DNA of 64,000 nt from the NCBI GenBank assembly GCA_965202585.1, contig OZ241826.1:15314001-15378000 (forward strand), written 5' to 3'. A program made the translations under genes and the position numbers. The number at the start of each line of letters is the position of its first letter. The first letter of the stretch is position 1. The notes under the pieces were generated by a model. That model was not told where the DNA came from. It worked only from the letters and a program-made list of their open reading frames with translations, and made no database searches. Positions 738 to 61,558 of this stretch are shown here, piece by piece. This DNA comes from Thalia democratica. Taxonomy: Eukaryota.

Positions 738-3145
738 GTGCTTCTGTTGTGGTATCTACAGATGGCAGTGATGTGGTTGTCGGCGCAACACCTTCCGTGG
801 CTTCTTCAGTTTCTGAGGTTGTCTGATCGGATCCTGTGGTTGAGCTTGGTCCAGGTCCTGACGGCGTGGTCGTCTCAGATTTCTGTGTGGTTGAAGTCAC
901 GACGCTTCCCTGTGTCGTTTCAACTGAAACTGGCGCACCTGCTGTAGATGTTTCAGATGTCATTCCTGGTGTAGTTGTTTCCACTGATGTAGCTGTTGTT
1001 GGCGAATGTACAGGAGTTGACTCAACTAGCATGCACCTTGCGCAACACTCTCCGTCCATCTGTTTTAATTTTTGATTGAAATTGTTATTTACATAAGGAT
1101 TGTTAGGTTAAACAATCAAAAATCTAAAAGGTTAAAGTATGTTAGTTGTAAAGGTTTTCTAGTTTAGCATGTTATTTTAAACTCCCAAAAGTTTACTTTA
1201 AGTAAATTAAATTAATAAACAACAGACTCTAAGTTATCATATTCTGTTTAAATCAAATACCTTGACGGCTTTTTCATTGATGAGACAAGCTGGTGTCTTG
1301 CACTCTTTCATGTGGCATTCTGTTTTGTTGCTCATGCACATGCAGGTACCGCATCCGTCAGCTGATTCCCATATGTCTCCGTTCTGTGTAAATAATAAAG
1401 TATGTGTAATTACTTTTAACAAGTAAACTTTTAAAAAAGCTCTAGAACTTAAAAAAGTTGAATCAGTTACAATACTATATTTTAGACTTTACTTTATTTT
1501 GATTGAACTACTTATGCTTGTAAAACTAGAAGTTTACGTGCTATAAAGAAACATGTATTGTAACAATTATGAGTATAGCAGTTTTTAGATAAAATAAACA
1601 ACAAAACAAACATTGTACACTTGGTCCATGTAAACGCACGGACAGTCCTCCTCAGCCACGCAGTTGTGACCATCGTACATGGTACCGTGGGGACACGTGC
1701 ACCCCTGGTTACAGCCTTCCGTGGTTGCCACGCAACCGTCCCTCAAGTGGGGGCACATGTTTGTGCACGAGTTGGCGCAATCGTCGTATGACATCGGTGC
1801 ATCACATACACTGTGTTTGAAATACTATTGTTGAAATTTTTTGTTTTTTAATCCAATTAATTTGGGTTGATTAAGTTAGTATTCAACTGTGCATTGCAAA
1901 AATTGTATTTTGATTAGAATTTGTCAGAAATCTTTAACTTTTGAACTTTGAACATTTTAACATTGTTTTTTACTTTTAAAAAGAAAGCAATAACTAAAAA
2001 AAAACAACTAACAACTTTTATATAAGTAAACACAAAAACATTAAGTGGTTGTAGAACAGTCTGTTTTAAACTAAAGTAAACTTATACTGCAAAGCAGTTA
2101 GTTAAAGTTTCAACATTATTACGGTTACAACAGTTACCTAACAAACGTTTAACTATTTTAAACTTTTAACTTCAAGAAAAAATAAAGTTAATAATACCTG
2201 GTAGTAGTGGTTGTCTTGACAGTAGTAGCAACCTGGGCAGTTGTGCCTTGTGGAACGCAGCTGCAACAACCAGTCTCTGATTCAACTACCTTCGTTTCAC
2301 TTTCATCGCAATCACATGAAGTCTGTGAAAATATTCGGTAAATGATTATTTTTAGAAGAATTTAAAGTATTTAAGTTTAAAGCATTGTTTTCAAAGCCTT
2401 TATGTAAAAATGTTGAAAGTTGTAGTTCATTTGTAGCAATTTAAATAATTAAATCTTGACTTGTTATTGTATTATACACAAGTTATAAGTATTTTGGACA
2501 AGGTTGAAGACTTTATTTTCTAAAATGAATAATACTTAAAATTTAAATTTGAACAACTAACCTTGCAAACTTGTTGTGTGGTGCCACTGATAACACCAGT
2601 AGTAAACACATTAGCAGCAGTAGTTGAAATAAATACAGGTGAACTTGTTGTAGTGACAATCATATTCTTTGTTGTTTCGTCTGATGCTATATATATTGTT
2701 AATTGTTAAAGTTTTGTAAAAAAATAAGGCAAGTTATTTTTGGTCTAAAGTTAGACTTTCAGATTTCGATAAGCTTTGGCTTAATGAAAGTGTTAAAAAA
2801 AGTTTTTAATAATAACCTTCAGTTCTAAACTTATATGCTTTTATTACTTAATGTTGATTTTTGCTAAACATAACAAAGTTTAATTATGCATAAGCACTTT
2901 CTTTTTATTACTTTTCATTTAAAACCAAACAACTAACTTGGCACAGTGACAACAGTGGTGGTCTGTTCAGGGTCGAAGGACGGGGCAGTCGTGGTCTCGA
3001 CGACCTGTTTGGTGGTGGTGGTTTGCACGGGTAGCTTGGTTGTGGTGTCCATGACAATTTTGGACGTCGTGGTAACCACGTTGGTCGTTTTCGGCTTGGT
3101 TTCGACCACGGTGGTTATTTCAACTGCTCCACTGGATGTTTCGGT
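738..3145 (-). CDS. Distal PTS linkers with TIL and VWC modules; gene continues past the window edge
   Basis: [40 protein letters not shown]; [30 protein letters not shown]. The last exon seen ends in a phase-1 gtaagc donor at 737. Confidence 0.88.
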
Positions 3146-6100
3146 CTGATAGTGAAATTAATTAAATTTGATTAAATACTTTTTTGATTTGAAATTATTC
3201 TTTAATATGCTGTATGTAGTTTTTAAAAACCATAAAAGTTTAAAAAACAATAAAATAAAAAAATATTTAGACTATGTATGTGTTACTATTATTGAAACGA
3301 TATAATTTTTATTTTTATTTACCACCATACCAAACTTGAGTATTTTCTCATACTACAGAATCACATTTATCTACCTGCTAGATTTGTTTAAGCTTTTGTC
3401 TGTACAACTTTTGTAATCTTGTTTTTTACAAACCTCAGTTGTTGATGGAGTGGTACCCATTGTTGGGGCGGTCGTCTCATCAACGACTGCTGGTTTGCTG
3501 GTCGTCTTGGCAACGCTTCCGGTCGTTTCCGTGGTCACCACCTTGGTGGTCGTCACTACGACGCGTTGCTCGTAGCAACCGGTGACGTCAACTCTTAACG
3601 ATGGAATGACGTCATCGCTCGATGACATCACTGGGTAGACACGGATAGCAGTGACGTCATTGAGTGGTGTTGGGAACTCGATGACTGAAATCTGACTGGC
3701 ATCAGTGCTGGCTTGGAAGACCTGATAATTTAGATTGTTATGAGGGGTAAAACATCTTTTAAGCTAAGTTATGAGGGGTAAAGCTATATATTGCGGTATT
3801 TAGTTAATCAATTCAGTTTAAGCTTTTGTAGACTTTTCTAAGTAAAAAATACAAGTTTTACTGTAAAAGTTGATATGAGATATTTATACTTTTAACAACT
3901 TAATTAGGGATAAACCTACTCTGTTGTATTAATTTGTCTTAATTTGTATAAAAGTAAATCAGAAAACTATTCAGCAAGTATCGAAACAATCATATGTAAT
4001 TTTAAGACTTGTTTAGTTAAATAATAAAACTAACAGTTGAGTCGTGAGCATCAACAGCTTCAACCCAATTATCACCATTCAAATATTCGATCTTCACAAA
4101 AGAAGTCCAAGATTCAACATTCACACCTCCCTGCACCAAAACTTGCACCACGGTAACCCCCTGGTCGAACTCAACCTGCAGGTATCCTTCCGAATCCCCT
4201 GACGACGGTTGCCATGCGTCGTTGACAACGGAGCTTCTGTCGCTAGTGTCGACCGTTTTGGACATTGATGCCAGCTTGGAGTTGCTCGAAGCCGTGTAGG
4301 TGCTTTCAGGAACCGGAATTCCCCTGTACTGCGTCAGCATCATGACCTCATCGGCACAAGTCTTGACCGTGGCGGCGGTGGTCGTCATCAGCGGCGATTC
4401 GGTGGATTTCGTGGCCAATGTGGTCGTTTCAACAACTTTGGTGGTTTCCACCGTTGTCATTGGGTTTTCAGTTTCCGGTTCAGTGGGTTCTGTAGTCGTC
4501 TTGGTTTCGGTGGTTTCCACGACTTTCACGGGGCCCGTGGTTGCTACGGTGGCCGGGGTGGTTTCTACGACTACAACCTCGGTGGTGGTGGTTCCGCTAG
4601 ACGGCGTTGTTTCCGTGGAAACCGATTTCGTAGTGGTGACAATGACCGGTCCGTTTGGTGTCGTCACTACCTCCTCTGTGGTTGCTATGACGTCACCCTC
4701 TGTTGTCATGACGTCAGAGGGTTTCGAGGTGACGACGGCCGACGATGTGGTGGTTTCCGTTTCTCCCGTCTGCCGGGTGGTCGTCTCGTGACTGACCACT
4801 TCGCCCTGACTCGTCGTGGAGATTATGGTCGTTTCGGTGTAAGTTGGGGATTTTTTGGTCGTCGTCACGATTTTGACTGGTTTGCCGGTTGTGACATCTG
4901 ATGGTTTTGTAGTTTCAGATACTGATGGTGACGATGTAGTTTCAACTTCAGACTTTTCAGTAACTTCTGGTGCTGTAATAAATACAAATTTTTTTAATTG
5001 TGATGTTTTGATATCAATTTTTACAAATTTAGCTTTTCAAGTAATTATTTTAAAAGAAAATTTTAATTGGAAAAATAAATAAGTATTAAAAATTATTATC
5101 AGAGAAAAATTAGCTATTTTAAAATAGATTAACAATGGTAATACGGGTTTTTTATTAATTCTGCATATACAGTTTCTTTATTTTACCATAACCATGAATA
5201 TTTAACTTTAATTTATTTTATTAGTTTCTAGCTAACTTTCTGTTGTTGGTACGGTAGTCATGACAGACTTAACAGTAGTTTCATGTGTTGGTACTTCACT
5301 AGTAGTTTCAACAACTGTTGTTTTCTCATATGATTGAGTTGTTACTGGTGATTCAGTGCTTTCAACAACTGGTGATGGTGTAGTTTCAACTGATGTTTCA
5401 GTTGATGTAACTTTCTCATACATTGTTGTTGTGGTAACTTGACCTTCAGGAGATGTTGTTTCTACTTCAACTGGTTTGTAAGTTGTAGTTTCAACAGTCT
5501 TGCTGGTTGTAGTTGGTTCAGAAGTTTCAGTTGATTCACCAGTTGTGAATGTTTCTAAAAATAATATGTATTCTTGAAAATCTATTTACTTTCAGAGATG
5601 ATTTAATGTACAAAGCATCATTTAGCTTAAAAACTTATTTAAAACTTTAGCTTACTAGAGTTTTAAACAAAAACTAACAAAAAAATTGAAAATGAAGTAT
5701 TACCAAAAAATTTATTTTACAGTTTATGTTTTAAAAGAACATTTATATATATATATATATCCTTAAAGGTTTTAGTTTATAATTTTTTTAACCTTTAACT
5801 GTAGTTTGTACAACGACAACAGGCTCAGTTGTTGGTTCATCATTTGAAGATGTAGATGTAGGAGTTGATGTTACGACCTCCGTTGTTGTCTTTTCTACAG
5901 TTGTTGGCTCCAAAGCTGGTAAATTAAGCAATTATGAGTTCATGTGTTCGAAAATATAACATTTTAATATTACGTCGTCCAATAATTATCGCTTGTTAAA
6001 CAAAGATGAGCATATTTTTTGTACCGATAATAAACTTATTATTGTTTTGAGTTTTTTAAAATTTATTTTGTTCCGTGTGTAGTTAAAAATAAACTTTATT

Positions 6101-50300: not shown

Positions 50301-52852
50301 TAACTTTCTTTATTCACAGAATTAAAAAGTTTTATTTCAAAAAGTATAGATAGGTATACTAGCACTTTAAACTATTTAAAACTTAACTAAAGTTGTTATT
50401 AACAATACTTTATTGTTAATTGTCTTTTTATATAGATAATGAGAAAAATGACATCATTTTGAAACTTATTTTTTTAGTTTCGTACCTTTTCATATTACTA
50501 AGAGTGATTTTTTTCAAGTTTAAATTTATTAAAAAAACATACTTTAAGTCTTAAATCTCCTTGTTTATGTTTAAATAATTTAAGGTTAATATGCAATAAC
50601 TTAGATAAAACCTTACAAATTTAAAAAACCTTTTTTTCTTTAAAACTTTAATCAAGTTTTATAAAGTTTTCGAACAGTTTGTACTTAAAGTAGCTTTGTA
50701 TGATTTTGTTTATTTATTTTTAGCTTTGACTTTTTTTGCTTAGTTTTTAAACTACTTATTTATCATTTTATTTGTGGTATACCAAACGTTGAAGTTAAAA
50801 TAAAAGTAATCACGTAGACGAACTTTTTACTTTTTGTCAACAAAAAAAATATTATTTTTGTCAGTCAGAACAAAAACTTATAAAGTTCTTTATTGTTTTT
50901 TATACTACCTAGAATAATAGGTAAGTGGGTAGTCTGCCTTTTTTATCAAAAGTTGAATATATTTTAATAATACAGTATGATACTACTAACCGTTAAAAAC
51001 CCTTAAAAGGTATTTAAGTTTTAGAAACAATACATTTAAAAAAAGATCTTATCTTTACTGCAATACATTCAATGCTGTTAAAAATACATATTTAAAGAAT
51101 ATATAATACATTATTTATTTAGATGTGATAAATAGGACTTAAGTAAAATTTACATTTAGTTCTAAACAAAATAAAATTTTATTTTTAAAGTATAACTAAA
51201 TCTAATAAAAGACTGTAATTAAATTAAAAATAAACTCATAAACTAACCATGGTATTTTACCAGAAAAGGTGTCAATATTGCTAAAAATACTTACAACAAA
51301 AAATTAACAGTTTTTTTAAGCTAGCGTTTTTATCTTTGTTTCATATTTGTTTAGTATGATTTCAATATTTTTGAAAGGTTTTAAACAAACTTTTACTACA
51401 TACAAAACTTATTTGTTTTTTCTTTTTCAAATCAAAACAGTTGCTTTAAAAATAAATTCATATCATAAACACAGTAGTTTTCGGATTTTTGAACTGACAG
51501 TTTCACTCTAGTTTTAATAACTAACTTAATTAATTAGTTTTTTAAATTAACTTCTTATTTAGTTTGTAGTGAAATACAAGTAGCTTTTAAAAATTTGTTA
51601 CACCTTGAAACTATAATACACACTTTCTTAGTTTGTGGTATACAGTTTCTTAAAATTAAACAAAATTTATAATACAATTACTTGCTTATGGAAAATATCA
51701 AACCGTTATTGTTATTTGCTGACAGTCTTTTTTTGTTTACAACCATTTTAAAATATTATCTTAAAACAAATAAATTTTTGGTGACCCAAAATTTTTTATT
51801 GCTTACTTTGTCTCTCAAATTGTTAATATAAATACATTTACTAGATTATAAATTATAAATTAGTGTTAATTTTTGATGTTTTTACTACTAAATTTAGTTT
51901 ATTAGTGTGTTTTTTAAGTTAATAGTTTTTAAAAGTTTTGGTTTCAAACTAAATAAAAATACTTGAGGAAATAAAAGTCTAAAAACAGTTACTACTTCTG
52001 TCATTAAAGACCAAAGTTATTCTTTAAGTAAGCAATTCAAAAGAAGTATATGTTAAAATATTAGAAAATAAAATGTGCAAAGTAAAGAAAAATTGTTTTA
52101 AAAATAATCTACAGAGTAAGTTAATACTTATGGTGATATGTTTTTATACGTTAAAAATAGTTTATGGAATAGAACTAAAAAAAAACAAGTTAAAGTACTT
52201 AAATTAGTTAGGTATTTAATTAAACCCTTGGAAAAACTACTTTTTGCAACTGATTTCAAATCAAATAACTTTTCTACAAAACTAGACATTTTAAATATGA
52301 ATTGTTAGATTTAAAATGTATTTTATACCTATGTTACTTACAAAAAAAAGCAGGTTAAAAAAAGTACAGCTAAAGTGTGTAAAACGCTAATTGCTGTTGA
52401 AAATATCTTGGGTAATAATCTAGGAGCTAAAGTGTGTAAACATCTAAAAATCGGTTAAAAAGAGTTAAAACTAATTTATGAGCAAACGCAATGGAAAAGT
52501 CTTTAAAGCAGCTTTTACCAAAAAACAAAGATATATTTTAACTATTTAGTACTGTTGTTTATAATAACTTCATTTTGAATTAAATAAATATTTACTTTTT
52601 AGTAAGTTGAAAATTTGTTTGTAATGCAATATTATCCGTTGTAAAATTTAATTGTTTCTTTTTTCTACAACAAGGTTGATTTATTAGAAGCAAAATGTTC
52701 TGTATATTTCAAGTTGTATTGCAGAAATAGCTAAATATAAAAAGCAAGCTCAGCAGTTGTCTAAAAAGTTCAAAATCATTTAACTTTCTACTGTTGGTGA
52801 AGTAGCTAGCAGTTTTACGTTTATAAACGCAATTTTAGTTTTCTGACCGTCG

Positions 52853-52925
52853 GGTTCCATAGTGTAGCGGTTATCACGTCTGCTTTACACGCAAAAGGTC
52901 GCAGGTTCGAGCCCCGCTGGAACCT
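52853..52925 (+). tRNA. tRNA-Val(TAC), mismatched copy (possibly non-functional)
   Basis: GGTTCCATAGTGTAGCGGTTATCACGTCTGCTTTACACGCAAAAGGTCGCAGGTTCGAGCCCCGCTGGAACCT. C:A mismatch in the anticodon stem and A:C mismatch in the T stem relative to the 60424 copy. Confidence 0.8.
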
Positions 52926-53264
52926 TTTGTAAAAAGAAACTTTAAGATTATCTTCTACACATTTGTAATACATCAATTAGTATTTAAGATTGATACCTAG
53001 TTGATACCAAAAACTAAATTTTTATTTGAATAGGGTAATTGGTTCTGTGAAAGCTGTTAATTTTCTTTAAAATTTATTTACTTTGAACATAATTTTAAAT
53101 CTACTAACAAGCCATAGTTTGTTACTTTATTGCACAATACTAACTTATGTTATCAACTTTAAAACGCTATGTTTTTCTTTTGTTTAAAAAAATTAGTAAA
53201 TATATCACTTACAATAATAAAATCACACCGGAACAAACAAAAAATATGTTCTCATTAGAATTTA

Positions 53265-53335
53265 AATGAATTTAAATTTAATGGCTCTGACATTCTGAGT
53301 TTTAGCGAACGTTATAACCGCTTCACTATGAAAGC
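53265..53335 (-). pseudogene. Decayed tRNA-Val (AAC/CAC-type) remnant
   Basis: Minus strand GCTTTCATAGTGAAGCGGTTATAACGTTCGCTAAAAC resembles the tRNA-Val 5' half (TAGTGTAGCGGTTATCACGTTCGC); 3' half is lost. Lies at the mirror position of the 60002 copy. Confidence 0.6.
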
Positions 53336-53556
53336 TTGCAAAAATTTTAACTTTTTAGAGCTTATAAACCTCAACTTTATAAGTGTGCAAAGACTTTGAA
53401 AAATAAATAGCTATCTTTTTAAAATGCTATTATACGTTCGTATTTTTTAACAAGTTTCTAATTTTTGTTTAATTTTTACAAGCTTATTAAAAACACTTTG
53501 AAAAAATTTAAACCGAAACTTGAGTGATAATTAACTAATGTTATTAGTGGCATTGA

Positions 53557-53812
53557 TATGGGACACGTTCAAAATTCCCCCGCGTACAAAATCCATCCGA
53601 TCAAAATCCATCAAGTCCAATTCGAGAACCGCTTACCGATTGCGGGTAAGGGTTAGGGGTACACTGATAGTGAAAATATATGCAAAATAAACAAAAAAAA
53701 TGCAAAAAAAATATAGAATAAATTAATAAATAAATAAAATGTTTAAAGATCGAGTTTATTTTGAACGCGGGTGGATTTTGAATGGGAGGATTTGGATAGT
53801 ATACCGTTCATG
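53557..53812. mobile_element. Small inverted-repeat element (MITE-like)
   Basis: CCGCGTACAAAATCCATCC / repeated CAAAATCC on the left is mirrored by ATTTTGAACGCGGGTGGATTTTG on the right; centre contains GGGTAAGGGTTAGGGG. Termini and TSD not resolved. Confidence 0.5.
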
Positions 53813-54710
53813 TACTATATACTTTTTTCACTTTTAAACTAACTTTTTTATAAGGATACAACTGTGTAACATGCTTTCTACTACAATGTGATTATTTCAG
53901 CTTTAGCTAAAGTCTTTATTGGAAGTTTTTATTTCATAAATATTGTTTTAAACTCAGCTACTAATTAAAGTAAATACATAAAATCACTAACCTTTAGTGT
54001 ATGATAGTTTTAAGACAAGTATAATAGGTTAAAAGACCTAAAAACATTATTTGTGCTTAAGGATTGTGAGCATTAACTAAGGATACTATTTAACAAAATT
54101 GTTTAAATTTTCAATATCTAAATGAAATGTAGAGTATCATATAAGTATAATTTTAAATCACTTCAATGTTTTTGTACTTTAGGTACATAAAATTTTGAAA
54201 ATACCAGTTTACTATGTTAATAGAAAAAATGAATTTGTCCTATTATGATTTATTCTTAAAATAAAAATTTGGAATAAAATCAACTTATTCCGCTATTTAC
54301 AATTTTTATTTGCGCTATTTTTACTGAAGGCAGTGCAGCTAAAAGATAATTTTGTCAATATAAGTATTTTTTACAAATTTGAAGTATTTATATTTTAGTT
54401 TTACTTATAAAATACACAGTATTCGTTAGGACTATAACTAAACTTTGAGCTTAAGTTCGGTTACTTATAAATTGATTTATTATCGTTAATGTTTAGTTTA
54501 CTAAATAAATACATTTATTAAACAAATAATTGGAAATATAATGAAACTTGATAATCTAACATAAGAAAATGCAAGGAGTTAGGAAAATGTAAGCATGAAA
54601 ACAAAAATAACTGATTGTAACAAAGTTATTACTTCAAGAAACACATTGAAAAAATGTTGAACATATTCTGTATACTATCCAACAAAAAATAATGAATAAA
54701 TTTTTGATTG

Positions 54711-54758
54711 TTAATTGTTTTTCAAATTAAATGGATGAAGAATTCCATATACCTTCTT
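54711..54758 (-). CDS. Duplicated alternative terminal exon of the small membrane protein gene
   Basis: Same acceptor context (ttaattaacag) as 55409; phase 0; encodes KKVYGILHPFNLKNN*, compared with EKKSGIVHPIDLE*. Confidence 0.55.
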   Translation of the reverse strand, partial: KKVYGILHPFNLKNN

Positions 54759-55367
54759 CTGTTAATTAAATTAAAATTAATTTTGAATACTTTATTAAAG
54801 CTAGTTTAAAATTTAAATGAATATTTTATTAATTTGAATGTTTTGAGAATTAAAGCTCTTCAAACGTGAAAATTACTAAATTAAGGTTTTTGGATAATGA
54901 TTTGCTGTTTTACGATTTATATCTTAAATATAAATCTTGTTTGAAAACATCTTTATTTATTGTTCATATACACACTACATTCAATGCAATTATTGGTTTC
55001 AAACAATTTGGTCATTAATTTTTTGTTTAACTGCATGAAAACTATGTATTTTAGTTTTTTTTTTTACAAATCCGTTGTAGTTTTTGACTATTTAATACTT
55101 ATAAATCAAATAGATTTTCTTTATGTTTAATTTACTATTTAAAAACAACAGGATTCATTTTTTTACTTTATTGAACAAAGATTTGGAAGCACAACGAAAC
55201 TTAATAATTTAACTAAAATAAATTCAATAAACCAACGGAATGGAAATATAAAAACAAATAGTAATGATTGCAACAAAATATGTACTTTAAGACGAAAGAA
55301 TTTGGAAATAATGCTAAACATATATTATGTTTGTTTTAACAAAAAATTTTGAAAAACTTTTTGAATA

Positions 55368-56735
55368 TTATTCCAAATCAATTGGATGTACAATACCGGA
55401 TTTCTTCTCCTGTTAATTAAATTAAGATAAGTTTTAAATAATTTGTATAAGTAATCACAACGTTTTTGTTTATATATTTTCAAACTGCTAAAAAACAATT
55501 TATCTATAAACAAAGATATTGTTATTGGAGGATATTATTTACAGTTTTTAACTAAAAAATTGAGAAATAAAAATAAATAACCTCATGCTGTTTTTTGTCA
55601 ATACATTTATGAATTTTGTTAATTTTCTTCAAAGTGTAAACAAATCCTGTAGACATTCCAATTCCAATGGCCACTAGTAACACAATTGCCACAATAATCA
55701 AAACTGTATTAGATCCTGTTAAAATATTATTTTTAATTTGATTAAGAATTAATAGTGTAGTACAGCTATAATATTATTTTGTAAATAAACAAGTTCTCAA
55801 TACTTAATTTAAAAGGATCGAAAATGTTATGTTAGTCTTCAGCACTTTGTTATTATACAAATTAGATAAACCTTCATTTATCACATCAGTAGTAGCCATC
55901 AAGACAAAACAATTAGACTTTTCATCAGTTGAACTTGATGTATTGTTACATTTACTCAAAATATCATCCAACTTCAAACAAACTTCATCATTACTTCCAC
56001 ATAACTCATCTGCAAAAATGTATAATTATAGTCAAAAAGTTATAGCGGATGTTTTTACAACTATATATGAAGTCTAATTAAAAAAATATATTTTCTAGAA
56101 TGTTAATATGCTAACTCACAAATGTTTAGATAGCTTGATTGTTCAAACTAGTTTTATACAAGTTCCGCTTCGTTTTTTTAACTCTAACACTTATAGTTAA
56201 AATACTTATAAATATTTTTCATGATATTTAAAACTTACAACATTAAAACTTCAAGAACAAAATAATCATCTAGTTGAAACTAACTTCTATTGATGGCAAA
56301 CAAATTTGTGAATTTTGATTTTACGCTTTTTTGAGCAGATTCAGCTGGAGAAAAATTTAAAATGATATTTTTTATGTAAGTATTACTATTGTCAAATATT
56401 AACTTTGTTGTAAGTTGCAAGTTACATTTTATAGAAAAACAACAAAAAACAAACTTAGATTGATGACTCCTTCAACTTTCAATTCCTGTAAGTATATTAA
56501 ATTAACTATAAAAAATAAAGAGCAAACAAGATTATTTTTGAAAGTTTTTGAAAAAACGTTTAATGGAGATAAGAAAAATGAATTAAAGATTAACAATTTC
56601 AAACCAAATAATACTTATTAGTTATATTTATCTTATCCATTAAATGTTATAAATTATATAACTAACATTATCTGACTTGGCACTAACATTGACCATGATA
56701 AAGAAAAATGAAACAAGAAGTAACAAGAATTTCAT
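55368..56735 (-). CDS. Small type-I membrane protein of unknown family (157 aa, 6 exons)
   Basis: Exons 56667-56735, 56455-56485, 56285-56344, 55872-56009, 55582-55715, 55368-55409; all GT-AG, phases 0-1-1-1-0 consistent. Protein: MKFLLLLVSFFFIMVNVSAKSDNELKVEGVINLTESAQKSVKSKFTNLFAINRNELCGSNDEVCLKLDDILSKCNNTSSSTDEKSNCFVLMATTDVINEGSNTVLIIVAIVLLVAIGIGMSTGFVYTLKKINKIHKCIDKKQHEEKKSGIVHPIDLE*. Confidence 0.75.
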
Positions 56736-57550
56736 ATTTCTACTTTTATTACAGCTGAGATATATGCAATTGTTTATAAGTTTTTATTACAAATAGGTGT
56801 TGCAAACAAAAAAAAAATTTGAAATTAGAACAAAAGTATTGTAATTTTAACACTATGTGAGCTACTATTATATATTAAAGCTATTAATAAGCTTAAAGCT
56901 TAGTAAAAGTTTAGCTTAATTTCTTTTATCATATTCAATTTAAAATAAATAAAATTGAAAAGATATGCAAATATCAAAGTTATTTCTATATATCTCCAAC
57001 AATTATGTACATATTTGAGGTTAATTAAAAACGCTAGTAAGTTTATAAAACATATTTTGATTAGTTGACAAACATATTTTTAATTTAAAAACTTTTTATT
57101 AGCTTAAGCTTTAGAATAAGCTTTAGCTTCATAAAAGTTTGACTAAATATTTTTGTTATATTCAGTTTAAAATAGCTAAAAATTTAAAGACATGTAAACA
57201 TCCAAGCTAGATATATCTATATTTGGTATTTATACACATGTGTAAGGTTGATTAAAAGCACTAACAAGTTATAATGTACATTTTTATTAATTGACAAAAT
57301 GTTTACTTTAAATACTTTTTATTTTTGTACTTTTTAACAACATTGCATGTTATACGAGTTTTTTAAAAGTTTTAGATTTTTTACACGAACGTATTTAAAA
57401 ATAATTTACAAAAAATAACACTATATCTATACTTAATATGAATTTCTTAAACATTAGTTTCAATAATCTAACAACAGAAGTACAAATTGCATTTTATAAA
57501 AAGTGTTTTTATGGCGCTTTTAACTTTATCAAATTTTAGTAAAATTTTAA

Positions 57551-57810
57551 AACAAAACATGTCATATCTATAAAGCAAGAAAAGTTGTTTTAGATATTTT
57601 GTGTAAATTAAACAAGAATTCTTAGCTCATTTAATTCTTTAGAAACTTGTTTATTTTATATCGAATAAACATGAAAAGAGTTTGGACATTTAGGTTATAA
57701 TTTTTTTTTGAGGTTTTGTTTGATATAGACAAAAATTGTCATATCTATAAAGAAATACAAATTGATTCAGATAGTTTTTGTCCAAATGGAATAAGAATTG
57801 TAAGCTCGAT
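57551..57810. repeat. Two diverged ~85-bp direct repeats, 177 bp apart
   Basis: GTCATATCTATAAAG at 57561 and 57738, each followed by a similar ..GATA.TTTTG..AAAT..AAYAAGAATT.TTAGCTC segment. Confidence 0.6.
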
Positions 57811-58022
57811 TTTTTTACAAAAACGTGTTTATTGCAAATAAGTGTTTAAAATACGCGAATATCTGATTTTGCAAAACTTTAGCTTCCCTATAAACAAGCA
57901 TGATTTTTCTAGTATTTCTCAAATTCAGAGTCTTAAAGTATCTTATATAATTCGAAATACAAAAGTAATGTAAACATAAATAATTACAAGCTGATTGTTT
58001 TTTAGTTTAATTCTATTTATAT

Positions 58023-58415
58023 TTAAGTTATGTTGAAGTAAAAATGATGAAATTTGTTTGAAGTTAGATGATATCTTGAGTAACTTTAAAAATAAAACAA
58101 ATCGAACAGATAAAGAATTATTTTTATTGATGAAAACTCTTCAATCGGTACAGAATATAAGGGTTTGTTTTTGTAAGTAATAAGTTTTTCTTTATTATTT
58201 AGTCAGGTATATTTTTACTTTTAAGAAACGGGACTAAATACTTTAACTCTTGTTATGCAAACTTTATAAAGTTTTCCAAAAGAGTTACAATCAAGCTCAA
58301 GTACTGCAGTGATTGTTTTACTAGCGGTAGTCATAATTAGATTGTTCACTGGATTATATGACATTAACAGGAAAATAAAAAAAACCTAAAATTTGTGAAC
58401 ACAGTAGATCATGAG
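58023..58415 (+). pseudogene. Inverted, disrupted paralog of the small membrane protein gene
   Basis: KLC*SKNDEICLKLDDILSNFKN aligns with ELCGSNDEVCLKLDDILSKCNN (GGA>TGA at 58034-36; acceptor ag>at). TM exon STAVIVLLAVVIIRLFTGLYDINRK ends in CATGAG|gttatt as in the intact gene, with a 1-nt frameshift in the A-run at 58377-84. Confidence 0.75.
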
Positions 58416-60001
58416 GTTATTTTTTATATGTTTTGATGTTTTTCAATAAATTCATACCATAATTACAACAAATTTTACATGCTAAGACATCTTAATTTTT
58501 GTTTGTTTTCTCTAATTCTTTAGAATACTATTTAGTTAAATTGTAATGGCTTTTTAATAATTTCATTAAGTTATTATAGCATTAAAGATATTGAAAATTT
58601 GATATTACTTGTAAATTTTCATAAAAAACCTCACAAACAAATTAATTCTAAAATTTTAAACAGAAGATAAAGCCTGCATTTTTTTCTAAAGTTGTTAAAA
58701 AGAATGAAATTAATAATCATGAGTTATCTTCAATATTTTGTTATATATTTGGTATATCTACCACATCATATTCAATAGTTCTGTACTGTGTAAGTTTTCG
58801 AGCAAATGATTCAATTGTTTAGTTTTTTGTAATCAAATTTTTTAGTTCCAATGTTAACTTTTAATACGCTTAATTACTTAACGTTTTGCGTTACTAAAAC
58901 TTGTTGTCTTGAACCTTCGTTTGTTAAAAAATGTACTGAAGTAGAGTGTTAAACAGAGTTACATATTACTTACATTATAACTATTACTTTGTTTTGTATG
59001 CGATCGAACCTGATATATAGGTTTATTTAACGTCCAAACATTTTACGCTGATAAATTAGAAAAATAAAAGATAATTAAGTAAAAAAAAAATTAAATGAGG
59101 TACGCGTATAACTAGTTTTAGAAAAATAAGAATAAAAAAATAAGTTTTAATGAAAATTTAAATGAGGTTTATGTATAACTAATTTAATTCTAGTCGACTC
59201 TATTTAATATTAAACAAAAAAATTGTTTTTGTCTATATGTACCTATTAATCTAAAAAAATAAGAATATGGTTTGATAAAAGACTAACAACATGAACTAAT
59301 TTTAAGTGGTTACGTTTTAAAAAAATTTGAAACTTTATTTATAATCAATGTATAAGAGCCTCTAACTAGTTTTGTCTTACAATCTTTTATAAAAAGTCTT
59401 TTTCCATTTCTATCTACTTATACAGTAACTTTCGTTTAATTGGACGTTATGTTCTAGAACATGTATAGTAGCTTTTCAAAAATTATTGTTTTTATTATCT
59501 ATTCATATATTTTGTTAAATTGGTAGTAGGTATTGTTTTTAAAAAATAATTACAAATAATTAATTTTATATTGAAAGCTTTCAATACAGTAAGAACTGTA
59601 GCAATTTACCAGTTTAATAGCTCTAATGTAAAAATTACAAACTTACATGAATGAGATTTAATTAGATTAAGATTAAATTTAATGATTAATAGTTTAGCAA
59701 GTGATTTAGCTTTTACAATAAATATAATGTTTCAAAAACTTAATTGTTACTTTATTTAAACAGTTTTAAAAGTGTTCAAGTTAAAAATTATTCAATTTAA
59801 ACATAAAAATAATGTTTTCGGATGTTACTGAGCTCAAATTTAATAGAGGGTTTTTTAATTGATAAAAAGCTGGTAAATTATTGTTATTATATAGAAAAGC
59901 CGATCACAAAACAAATACTCGTTTGAACTGATTAATTTAAATTTTTTACACGCTCATAGATTATAGGTTTATACAGGCTTAAAAGCTTATTAATTTAATA
60001 A

Positions 60002-60074
60002 TGTTCTGTAGTGTAGCGGTCATCACGTTCGCACAGCAGGCGAAAAGTCTCCGGTTCGAGCCCGGGCGAAAAAA
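60002..60074 (+). pseudogene. tRNA-Val-derived pseudogene
   Basis: TGTTCTGTAGTGTAGCGGTCATCACGTTCGC-ACAGCAG-GCGAAAAGTCTCCGGTTCGAGCCCGGG; A and B boxes retained, acceptor stem broken, anticodon loop lacks U33. Confidence 0.75.
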
Positions 60075-60423
60075 CTTTTAAGCAGAAAATTTAAAAATTC
60101 TGCTGTTCAAATTGTTGAATGAAAATTCCAAGGTAAATTATCAAAATTATTGTTTAATTATCTATATATATTGTTAAAGGTATATCATTTAATAGATATA
60201 AAATAAAAACCTTACTCAAGAAAGTCGCAAGAAAGCAATAGCATTTTATAAACAAAACATATTTTTTAAACTTAATAACAAACAAAAAACTACTTGCACA
60301 ACATATTTTAAATACATTTAAGTTTATATTATTGAAAAAAATATATAGGACTAAAGACTGCATAAAACTTTACAAGCTCTACTTAAAACGATATTAATTC
60401 GAATAAAACCTTAGTTATCAAAA

Positions 60424-60496
60424 AGGTTCCAGCGGGGCTCGAACCCGCGACCTTCTGCGTGTAAAGCAGACGTGATAACCGCTACACTATGGAACC
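60424..60496 (-). tRNA. tRNA-Val(TAC)
   Basis: GGTTCCATAGTGTAGCGGTTATCACGTCTGCTTTACACGCAGAAGGTCGCGGGTTCGAGCCCCGCTGGAACCT; acceptor, anticodon and T stems fully paired; position 73 is T, followed by a T-run. Confidence 0.9.
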
Positions 60497-61558
60497 CGAC
60501 GATAGAGCGGCTGTAACTGCAATTATAAACATAAAACAGCTTGCTACTTCACCAAGAGTAGAAAGTTGAATGAGTTTGTACTTTTTATTCTCAACTGCTG
60601 AGTTTGAATTTTTGTTCAAATTTTCCAGCAAAATAACTTTAAATATCAACGGCAGTATTTTTTAATTTAAAACTGAAAATTAATATTTTATAAAATGACT
60701 TCTTAAACAACTGTAGACTATAAATGGAGTGATATTAATACAAACTCTTTTTATTTTCGTGTTTATTAAGGCTTTTTAAAGTCTATTAACAACTTGTATC
60801 TTTTTTTTCTATTCGACAACAAGTTTTTAAATAAATAAGCAATTTTATTAATAATGCTGTAACGATAGGTCTACCAGTATGTGTTTTATTAAAGCTTTAA
60901 ACTTTCACCTCTTACTATAACTCTATCATACTTCTTGTAGCTGTTCTACCTTTATACAAAGTGTTTGAAAACTTATGAGGAAATTACTTTTAAAGCCGTG
61001 CTATATGTATTAACGCGTTTTAAAATTTCTAAGAAAGTCAAGTCAAGAAAGACGAGTGAAAAAATTTTAACCGTCAAGTTTAAGTTTAGGTCATTCACAT
61101 TATTTTTTGTAAAACAAAAACAAAATCAAAGTAACAGTTCAACAATAAAAACTAAGGACTTAGTATGCAAAACTTTTTTGTTTAATCTTCTTGTTAATAT
61201 CTTAATTAATTTCCACAAAGAGTAAAAGCTAAGTTCATTACAAACAAAAGCTAAATCCGTTTAGTACATTCAAAAACGTGTTTGATATAAATACAGCTGA
61301 TAAATGTTTCCTAACAAACAAACCTTTAGGGTCAATGTTGCAATAGAACGATAAAAATAGCTTTTAAAGCCGAGATTTCGGGCTAATTGTTTCAAATAGT
61401 AAACAAAACAAAACAAACATTCGAAAAGGAGAATTTTATATTTAAACACAGCGTTTTTATTTGCGGAGTGACACAGATGAAGCTGATGTAGTAAACATTT
61501 CATTCCAGCTTGAATATTTCAGTCTTTTTATTTTTGTGTGTTTCAAAGTCTCTATGCT

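Follow-up and report, generated by a model that had tools for sequence, protein, structure and literature searches.

FXYD proteins (phospholemman), KCNE proteins and similar small subunits have a signal peptide/type-I orientation, a very short ectodomain, a conserved helix with a face of small residues and a basic tail. Glycophorin-type sialoglycoproteins are small type-I proteins as well, with a Ser/Thr-rich stalk by the membrane and a GxxxG helix. Secretory-pathway products of schistosomes are encoded by micro-exon genes (MEGs), which are built largely from symmetric exons no longer than 36 nt whose lengths are multiples of three, so that exons can be skipped. Among tunicates, the surface proteins of Botryllus FuHC/fester and Ciona s-/v-Themis, which come from locally duplicated loci, are large, multi-domain and extremely polymorphic, and in the operons described from Ciona and Oikopleura, neighbouring genes are roughly 100 nt apart or closer.

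Here we describe a small gene, gene A, in the genome of the salp Thalia democratica. It lies near a giant gene in a stretch of 64,000 nucleotides (contig OZ241826.1, positions 15,314,001 to 15,378,000), which we call the window and to which all positions refer unless stated otherwise. With a probability of about 0.7, we consider that gene A is kept by selection, belongs to a small, lineage-restricted family and encodes a small type-I membrane glycoprotein, likely a helix-associating accessory or adaptor subunit.

Exon structure and constraint of gene A

Rebuilt on the minus strand at 55368-56735, gene A comprises six exons (69, 31, 60, 138, 134 and 42 nt, 5′ to 3′) that join into an in-frame coding sequence of 474 nt with a product of 157 aa (Table 1). 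The five introns all run from GT to AG with a T-rich tract before the AG, and the surrounding DNA is AT-rich (21-28% GC). The first-pass annotation had proposed six short exons with canonical splice sites, and both its coordinates and its exon count proved exact on rebuilding.

Table 1 Features of gene A, its relatives and the surrounding locus
Feature	Window position	Strand	Remarks
tRNA-Val(TAC)	52852..52926	+	Far end of the ~4.7-kb segment of gene A; between gene A and the giant gene
Conserved 3′ UTR of gene A	55119..55367	−	AATAAA at 55172-55167; A-B identity 72-88%, about 50% beyond
Exon 6 of gene A, 42 nt	55368..55409	−	Conserved C-terminal GIVHPIDLE and stop codon
Exon 5 of gene A, 134 nt	55582..55715	−	Predicted membrane helix with G-x-G-x-x-x-G motif and basic juxtamembrane tail; 134 nt in A, B and L016
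Exon 4 of gene A, 138 nt	55872..56009	−	Four-Cys ectodomain core, N-x-T sequon, variable Ser/Thr/Asp/Asn stalk
Exon 3 of gene A, 60 nt	56285..56344	−	Conserved NLT sequon junction; 60 nt in A, B and L017
Exon 2 of gene A, 31-nt micro-exon	56455..56485	−	31 nt and same GT/AG borders in A, B and Tara contig L017
Exon 1 of gene A, 69 nt	56667..56735	−	ATG and predicted signal peptide; 84% identity to paralogue B, gap-free
Leader, 19 nt	56736..56756	−	Preceded by candidate AG acceptor (56756-56755); block conserved between A and B, identity drops just upstream
Copy C	57998..58442	+	Pseudogene; inverted relic of exon 4, intron 4 and exon 5
tRNA-Val(TAC)	60423..60497	−	Mirrored arm with copy C
Tara contig L016			End of exon 3, then exons 4, 5 and 6 (147, 134 and 63 nt)
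Tara contig L017			Exons 2, 3 and 4 (31, 60 and 162 nt)
Tara contig L026			Exon 4 and start of exon 5

An intact paralogue, copy B (G000:C1:15291802-15293130, plus strand), lies 77 kb from A, outside the window and beyond the giant gene. It encodes 168 aa in exons of 69/31/60/150/134/63 nt, with phases as in A and GT-AG at all ten sites. Identity between A and B is 83-93% in exons and 56-72% in introns; measured in 50-nt steps along a 3-kb alignment, it reaches 0.78-0.86 exactly over the six exons and is about 0.5 between them. These identity peaks on all six exons, together with the exon sizes and phases shared with B, show that gene A is more than a chance model. Differences in length keep the frame. 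Exon 4 varies by multiples of three only (138/150/147/162 nt in A/B/L016/L017), and exon 6, which measures 63 nt in both B and L016, differs from that of A by in-frame indels. The coding indels between A and B are of 3, 15 and 15 nt, all multiples of three, as are 2 of 15 intron indels.

Substitutions between A and B likewise spare the protein. Synonymous sites differ in about 31.5 of 96 cases and non-synonymous sites in about 37.5 of 372 (pS 0.33, pN 0.10; Fisher P = 1.8e-7), which gives a dN of 0.108, a dS of 0.433 and a dN/dS of 0.25; differences at codon positions 1/2/3 number 17/11/41. In the last seven codons of exon 1, three of the four differences are synonymous. For the ectodomain alone, dN is 0.111, dS 0.387 and dN/dS 0.29, and all pairs of intact copies, including those on the Tara contigs, have a dN/dS of 0.23-0.46. 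These patterns indicate that the intact copies are under purifying selection, and values of 0.25-0.46 amount to moderate constraint only. Taken together, conservation, from which alone the junctions are read, indicates that the six-exon model is a real gene maintained by selection.

The gene ends are conserved as well. The AG upstream of the start codon may be a trans-splice or 5′-UTR acceptor; a search of the literature on spliced-leader use in salps returned nothing relevant. Past the stop codon, about 250 nt (window 55119-55367; L004 2168-2425; L016 960-1215) are conserved among A, B and L016 to the same degree as the exons of the coding sequence, with a mean column identity of 82% in the three-way alignment. 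This stretch reads as non-coding because its indels are not multiples of three. An RNA structure in the 3′ UTR was considered and rejected: the RNAalifold consensus reached −10 kcal/mol without a covariation gain.

Two further stretches were examined as possible additions to the model. Reading through the end of exon 5 would give an 'alternative tail', the peptides of which are wholly different in A, B and L016; the tail encoded by exon 6 is kept, so that conservation gives no support for two tails. Within intron 3, a block of about 70-100 nt (about 56123-56222) is 66-74% identical between A and B and is visible also in L017 and L026. It is probably regulatory rather than an exon, because it contains stops in the continuing frame.

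The three runs that matched the stretch in a 31-mer index were genomic DNA and none was RNA; this index could easily miss the RNA of another individual because non-coding alleles differ by up to 8%. Runs X1 and X2 come from the source sample and X3 from a relative that is 5-7% diverged, and the contigs of all three continue straight through the introns of gene A, as genomic DNA does. Among JGI metagenome contigs, a 35-nt pattern spanning the junction of exons 2 and 3 had no match, and its 20-mer junction core met only two unrelated GC-rich, bacterial-like contigs, which are chance matches; no spliced form was found there.

The predicted protein and its family

The product of gene A has only two hydrophobic segments, at residues 1-22 and 103-125 (Kyte–Doolittle maximum 2.84). 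The first has the features of a signal peptide, kept in both A and B: residues 3-15 form a hydrophobic core, and positions −3/−1 are occupied by small residues (V-S-A in A, V-C-A in B). The cleavage rule, applied by eye, predicts a cut after VSA at residue 19, before KSDN. The second is a putative membrane helix of 23 residues that is conserved in B, L016 and L026 and places glycines G117, G119 and G123 on one face. It is followed by 15 residues with 5 K/R versus 1 D/E and preceded by 15 with 0 versus 2. We infer a type-I single-pass membrane protein with a cleaved signal peptide, in keeping with the hydropathy profile and with the charges on either side of the helix. The cytoplasmic tail would span 32-43 residues across copies and ends in GIVHPIDLE.

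Between the two segments lies an ectodomain of about 83 aa with cysteines at 57/64/74/87 and sequons NLT at N32 and NNT/NTS at N75-76. A, B, L016 and L017 retain all four cysteines and the N-x-T that follows the third cysteine; L026 has lost both Cys64 and Cys74. By sequence rules, N-glycosylation is predicted at N32 and N75 and disulfides are predicted in the four-Cys core. An AlphaFold model of exon 4 only, made with four sequences, gave a two-helix hairpin at low confidence (mean pLDDT 64) that puts C64 and C74 on the same helix, and a pairing of those two does not fit this arrangement. The earlier description of a signal peptide, an ectodomain of about 80 aa with four cysteines and sequons, one transmembrane helix and a basic tail is thus well matched by the sequence features.

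In the T. democratica assembly itself (801.8 Mb, 1833 contigs), a six-frame search with the protein found matches at only two other places, and an exon-4 profile recovered just three copies, A, B and C, of which only A and B are intact. The figures given for the species are 790.7 Mb and 25.3% GC (PMC13746493). The full protein had no match in a word-indexed collection of 5.8 billion proteins, and P0001 added nothing new. The exhaustive search and the fold model used single-exon pieces, both being run on exon 4. Searched exhaustively with HMMER and the exon-4 profile, 1.84 billion representatives yielded two proteins, and a later profile search a third. All three are short open reading frames called on marine metagenome contigs of Tara Oceans (L016, L017 and L026), in which the GT-AG borders and phases are as in gene A.

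No Pfam family scored above its cut-off, and the sub-threshold matches cover the membrane helix alone. PDB sequence profiles and the ESM Atlas returned only chance-level matches to a helix of DIM1/TXNL4B, which 17-20 residues around the second cysteine of gene A resemble. Kinship with these proteins was rejected, given the scores (Atlas 0.78; PDB E = 0.028 over about 20 residues), their other cellular compartment and a thioredoxin fold that takes more than 45 residues. The first-pass annotation had recognised no family, and none emerged from Pfam, PDB, the ESM Atlas or the billion-scale protein searches. The borders and phases shared with the Tara contigs indicate that at least two or three wild genomes carry the gene as a conserved unit. 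The family appears to be restricted to one group of pelagic tunicates, because the searches found nothing similar outside this group. Our verdict is a small orphan gene family, lineage-restricted and of an ordinary kind.

We propose the following course for its product. The mRNA would be joined from the six short exons, and the protein would enter the secretory pathway by way of a cleaved signal peptide to become a single-pass type-I membrane glycoprotein. Its ectodomain of about 80 residues would consist of a four-Cys core, probably stapled by disulfides, with two conserved N-glycosylation sites and a short, variable stalk of Ser/Thr/Asp/Asn. A helix with a conserved glycine face of the GxxxG type would follow, and then the basic cytoplasmic tail with its GIVHPIDLE end. 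As to function, our guess is that the helix associates with itself or with another membrane protein, so that the product would act as a small accessory or adaptor subunit and not as a polymorphic recognition receptor. We make this guess because the ectodomain is tiny, the helix with its glycine face is well kept and the C-terminal motif is retained, and we borrow it from subunits of the FXYD/KCNE type.

The duplicated segment, allelic variation and the giant gene

Gene A sits in a segment of about 4.7 kb, comprising the small gene and a tRNA-Val(TAC) gene, that is present three times, at A, B and C, and would have been copied to leave A and B intact and C decayed and inverted. The A and C segments form a diverged 8-kb palindrome (window 52700-60650), and the B segment (G000:C1:15291000-15295000) is colinear with that of A in inverted orientation. 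In both the A and the B segment, the tRNA-Val gene is on the side that faces the giant-gene block.

Rfam found no RNA families here other than tRNAs. One of its calls, a weak 'tRNA-Ala(AGC)' at 60002-60075 on the plus strand (32 bits), is 75% complementary to the adjoining tRNA-Val, and the flank of B contains the same inverted tRNA pair as Val(AAC) and Val(TAC); the tRNA-Ala call is probably a diverged or decaying copy of tRNA-Val. At 57752-57875, each of the three DNA runs jumps in summed contig depth, from a level of about 100 to one of 2,600-5,300, and this interval is a short high-copy repeat inserted between the upstream region of gene A and pseudogene C. Upstream of gene A, 56875-57325 is a diverged two-copy tandem duplication with a unit of about 225 nt (77-88% identity in the best blocks), of which paralogue B apparently has one unit. 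Tandem Repeats Finder reported no repeats between 54 and 59 kb of the window.

Identity between copy C and A is 61%, and is no higher in the exons than in the intron. A TGA stands at codon 58 (Gly/Glu58 in A and B), two of the four cysteines are lost, the frame of exon 5 is shifted by a 1-nt deletion and reaches a stop, and nothing in C corresponds to exons 1-3. In a small tree, C forms a long branch beside L016. The 'fast-evolving paralogue next door' of the first-pass annotation is this inverted, 5′-truncated pseudogene, and with it goes much of the case for the role that the annotation had suggested, namely in immunity, allorecognition or on gametes. That suggestion loses its basis because the neighbour has decayed and the intact copies (dN/dS 0.25-0.46) are under purifying selection.

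We nevertheless weighed whether gene A could encode a polymorphic recognition molecule of the cell surface, diversified between alleles and copies, that serves in immunity, in the allorecognition of chains or colonies, or in the recognition of gametes. Its product is predicted to be a small orphan surface glycoprotein, it lies in a duplicated locus, and the length of the stalk differs between copies; the intact copies, however, are two only. Among the variants listed, the two haplotypes of the sequenced animal have at least eight base differences within 55590-55618 (30 nt), where six of eight tail residues are replaced, and agree over the remaining 104 nt of exon 5; the rebuilt haplotypes are partial, and these variants may include contigs of paralogue B. 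At the same positions, run X3 shows, among the variants listed, only the non-reference form, which looks nearer the family consensus. This allelic hot spot, as far as the listed variants go, lies in the cytoplasmic tail and not in the ectodomain, and non-coding heterozygosity at the gene A locus is about 8% anyway.

A second possible sign of diversification comes from L017 (318-667) and L026 (1-400), which represent one locus and share 94-98% identity in the introns that flank exon 4 but 89% within exon 4. The exon-4 excess is mostly synonymous, with a dS of 0.33, and gene conversion or a chimeric metagenome assembly fits it better than positive selection does. Neither an ectodomain dN/dS of 1 or more nor, in the part of the polymorphism that was covered, a non-synonymous excess was found, either of which would mark diversifying selection: dN/dS is 0.23-0.46 for all intact pairs and 0.29 for the ectodomain. 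With the supposed fast-evolving paralogue a pseudogene, we regard a recognition role as unlikely. We are equally sceptical of a variant in which gene A is a self/non-self or gamete tag of salps in whose alleles gene conversion between A, B and C would exchange short patches, although this could explain both the 30-nt tail patch and the discordance of exon 4 and introns in the Tara contigs, one of which lacks Cys64 and Cys74.

In the other alternative, the function of gene A is tied to the giant mucin-like gene: the two would be co-regulated or share an operon-like transcript, or the gene A product would serve as a dedicated anchor or handler of the secreted giant protein. The first-pass annotation had placed A upstream of the giant gene on the same strand and raised an operon-like arrangement. 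The placement holds, on the minus strand, and the position of B adds to it. The minus-strand open reading frames of the giant gene occupy a GC-richer block of about 65 kb that extends, on the window scale, from about −18 kb to about +47 kb. Copy B, on the plus strand, is found immediately to the left of this block and gene A, on the minus strand, to its right, both pointing inwards. The operon-like link, by contrast, is unlikely. Between A and the giant gene intervene about 8 kb of 21-25% GC, against roughly 100 nt or less in Ciona and Oikopleura operons, with a tRNA-Val gene on the opposite (plus) strand; neither the very short gap nor the missing 3′ end that marks tunicate operons is seen, and A has its own conserved 3′ UTR with an AATAAA. 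An operon is unlikely also because B, which is convergent with the giant gene and can share no transcript with it, keeps the same gene ends as A. We therefore hold any dedicated tie between the two genes to be improbable.

It is highly improbable that gene A is not an expressed protein gene at all, being a chance splice model or one of a set of recently dead copies: the three runs that match the stretch are all DNA, and in public collections only exon-sized fragments called on metagenome DNA resemble the protein, but conservation is specific to exons, synonymous changes are in excess (P = 1.8e-7), indels preserve the frame, ten splice sites are conserved in up to five independent loci, and copy C shows by contrast how a dead copy looks here.

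Comparison with known systems

Gene A, kept by selection in our reading, is a well-supported addition to the gene set of a tunicate whose genome is poorly annotated; scans for open reading frames miss it because every exon is short. It also provides an example of gene validation without RNA, in which conservation specific to exons is sought among old local duplicates and contigs from the environment. Were it a true recognition tag or a partner of the giant mucin, it would bear on the formation of salp chains or the building of feeding mucus; nothing found points there.

Among tunicate surface proteins, those of the allorecognition and self-sterility genes Botryllus FuHC/fester and Ciona s-/v-Themis share with gene A a locally duplicated locus; gene A differs in having none of their domains, as judged by Pfam, and in evolving under purifying selection. 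Gene A resembles the MEGs of schistosomes in making a secretory-pathway product from unusually short exons, the shortest of 31 nt. With exons of 69/31/60/138/134/42 nt, it is nevertheless not a micro-exon gene of the schistosome type: only one exon is of 36 nt or less, two of the lengths (31 and 134 nt) are not divisible by three, and a membrane anchor is predicted for the product.

Two further comparisons are with the small membrane proteins with which we began. Glycophorin-type sialoglycoproteins share with the gene A product the small type-I form, a Ser/Thr-rich stalk by the membrane and a GxxxG helix, but there is no sequence similarity, and gene A combines a four-Cys module with a stalk of a few residues. 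FXYD proteins (phospholemman), KCNE proteins and the like are similar to it in signal peptide/type-I orientation, very short ectodomain, conserved small-faced helix and basic tail. The gene A product differs from FXYD proteins in having no FXYD motif before the helix and no match to the Pfam family, and from FXYD/KCNE-type subunits in that only its ectodomain contains a four-Cys core and glycan sites. The likeness is one of build, not of membership.
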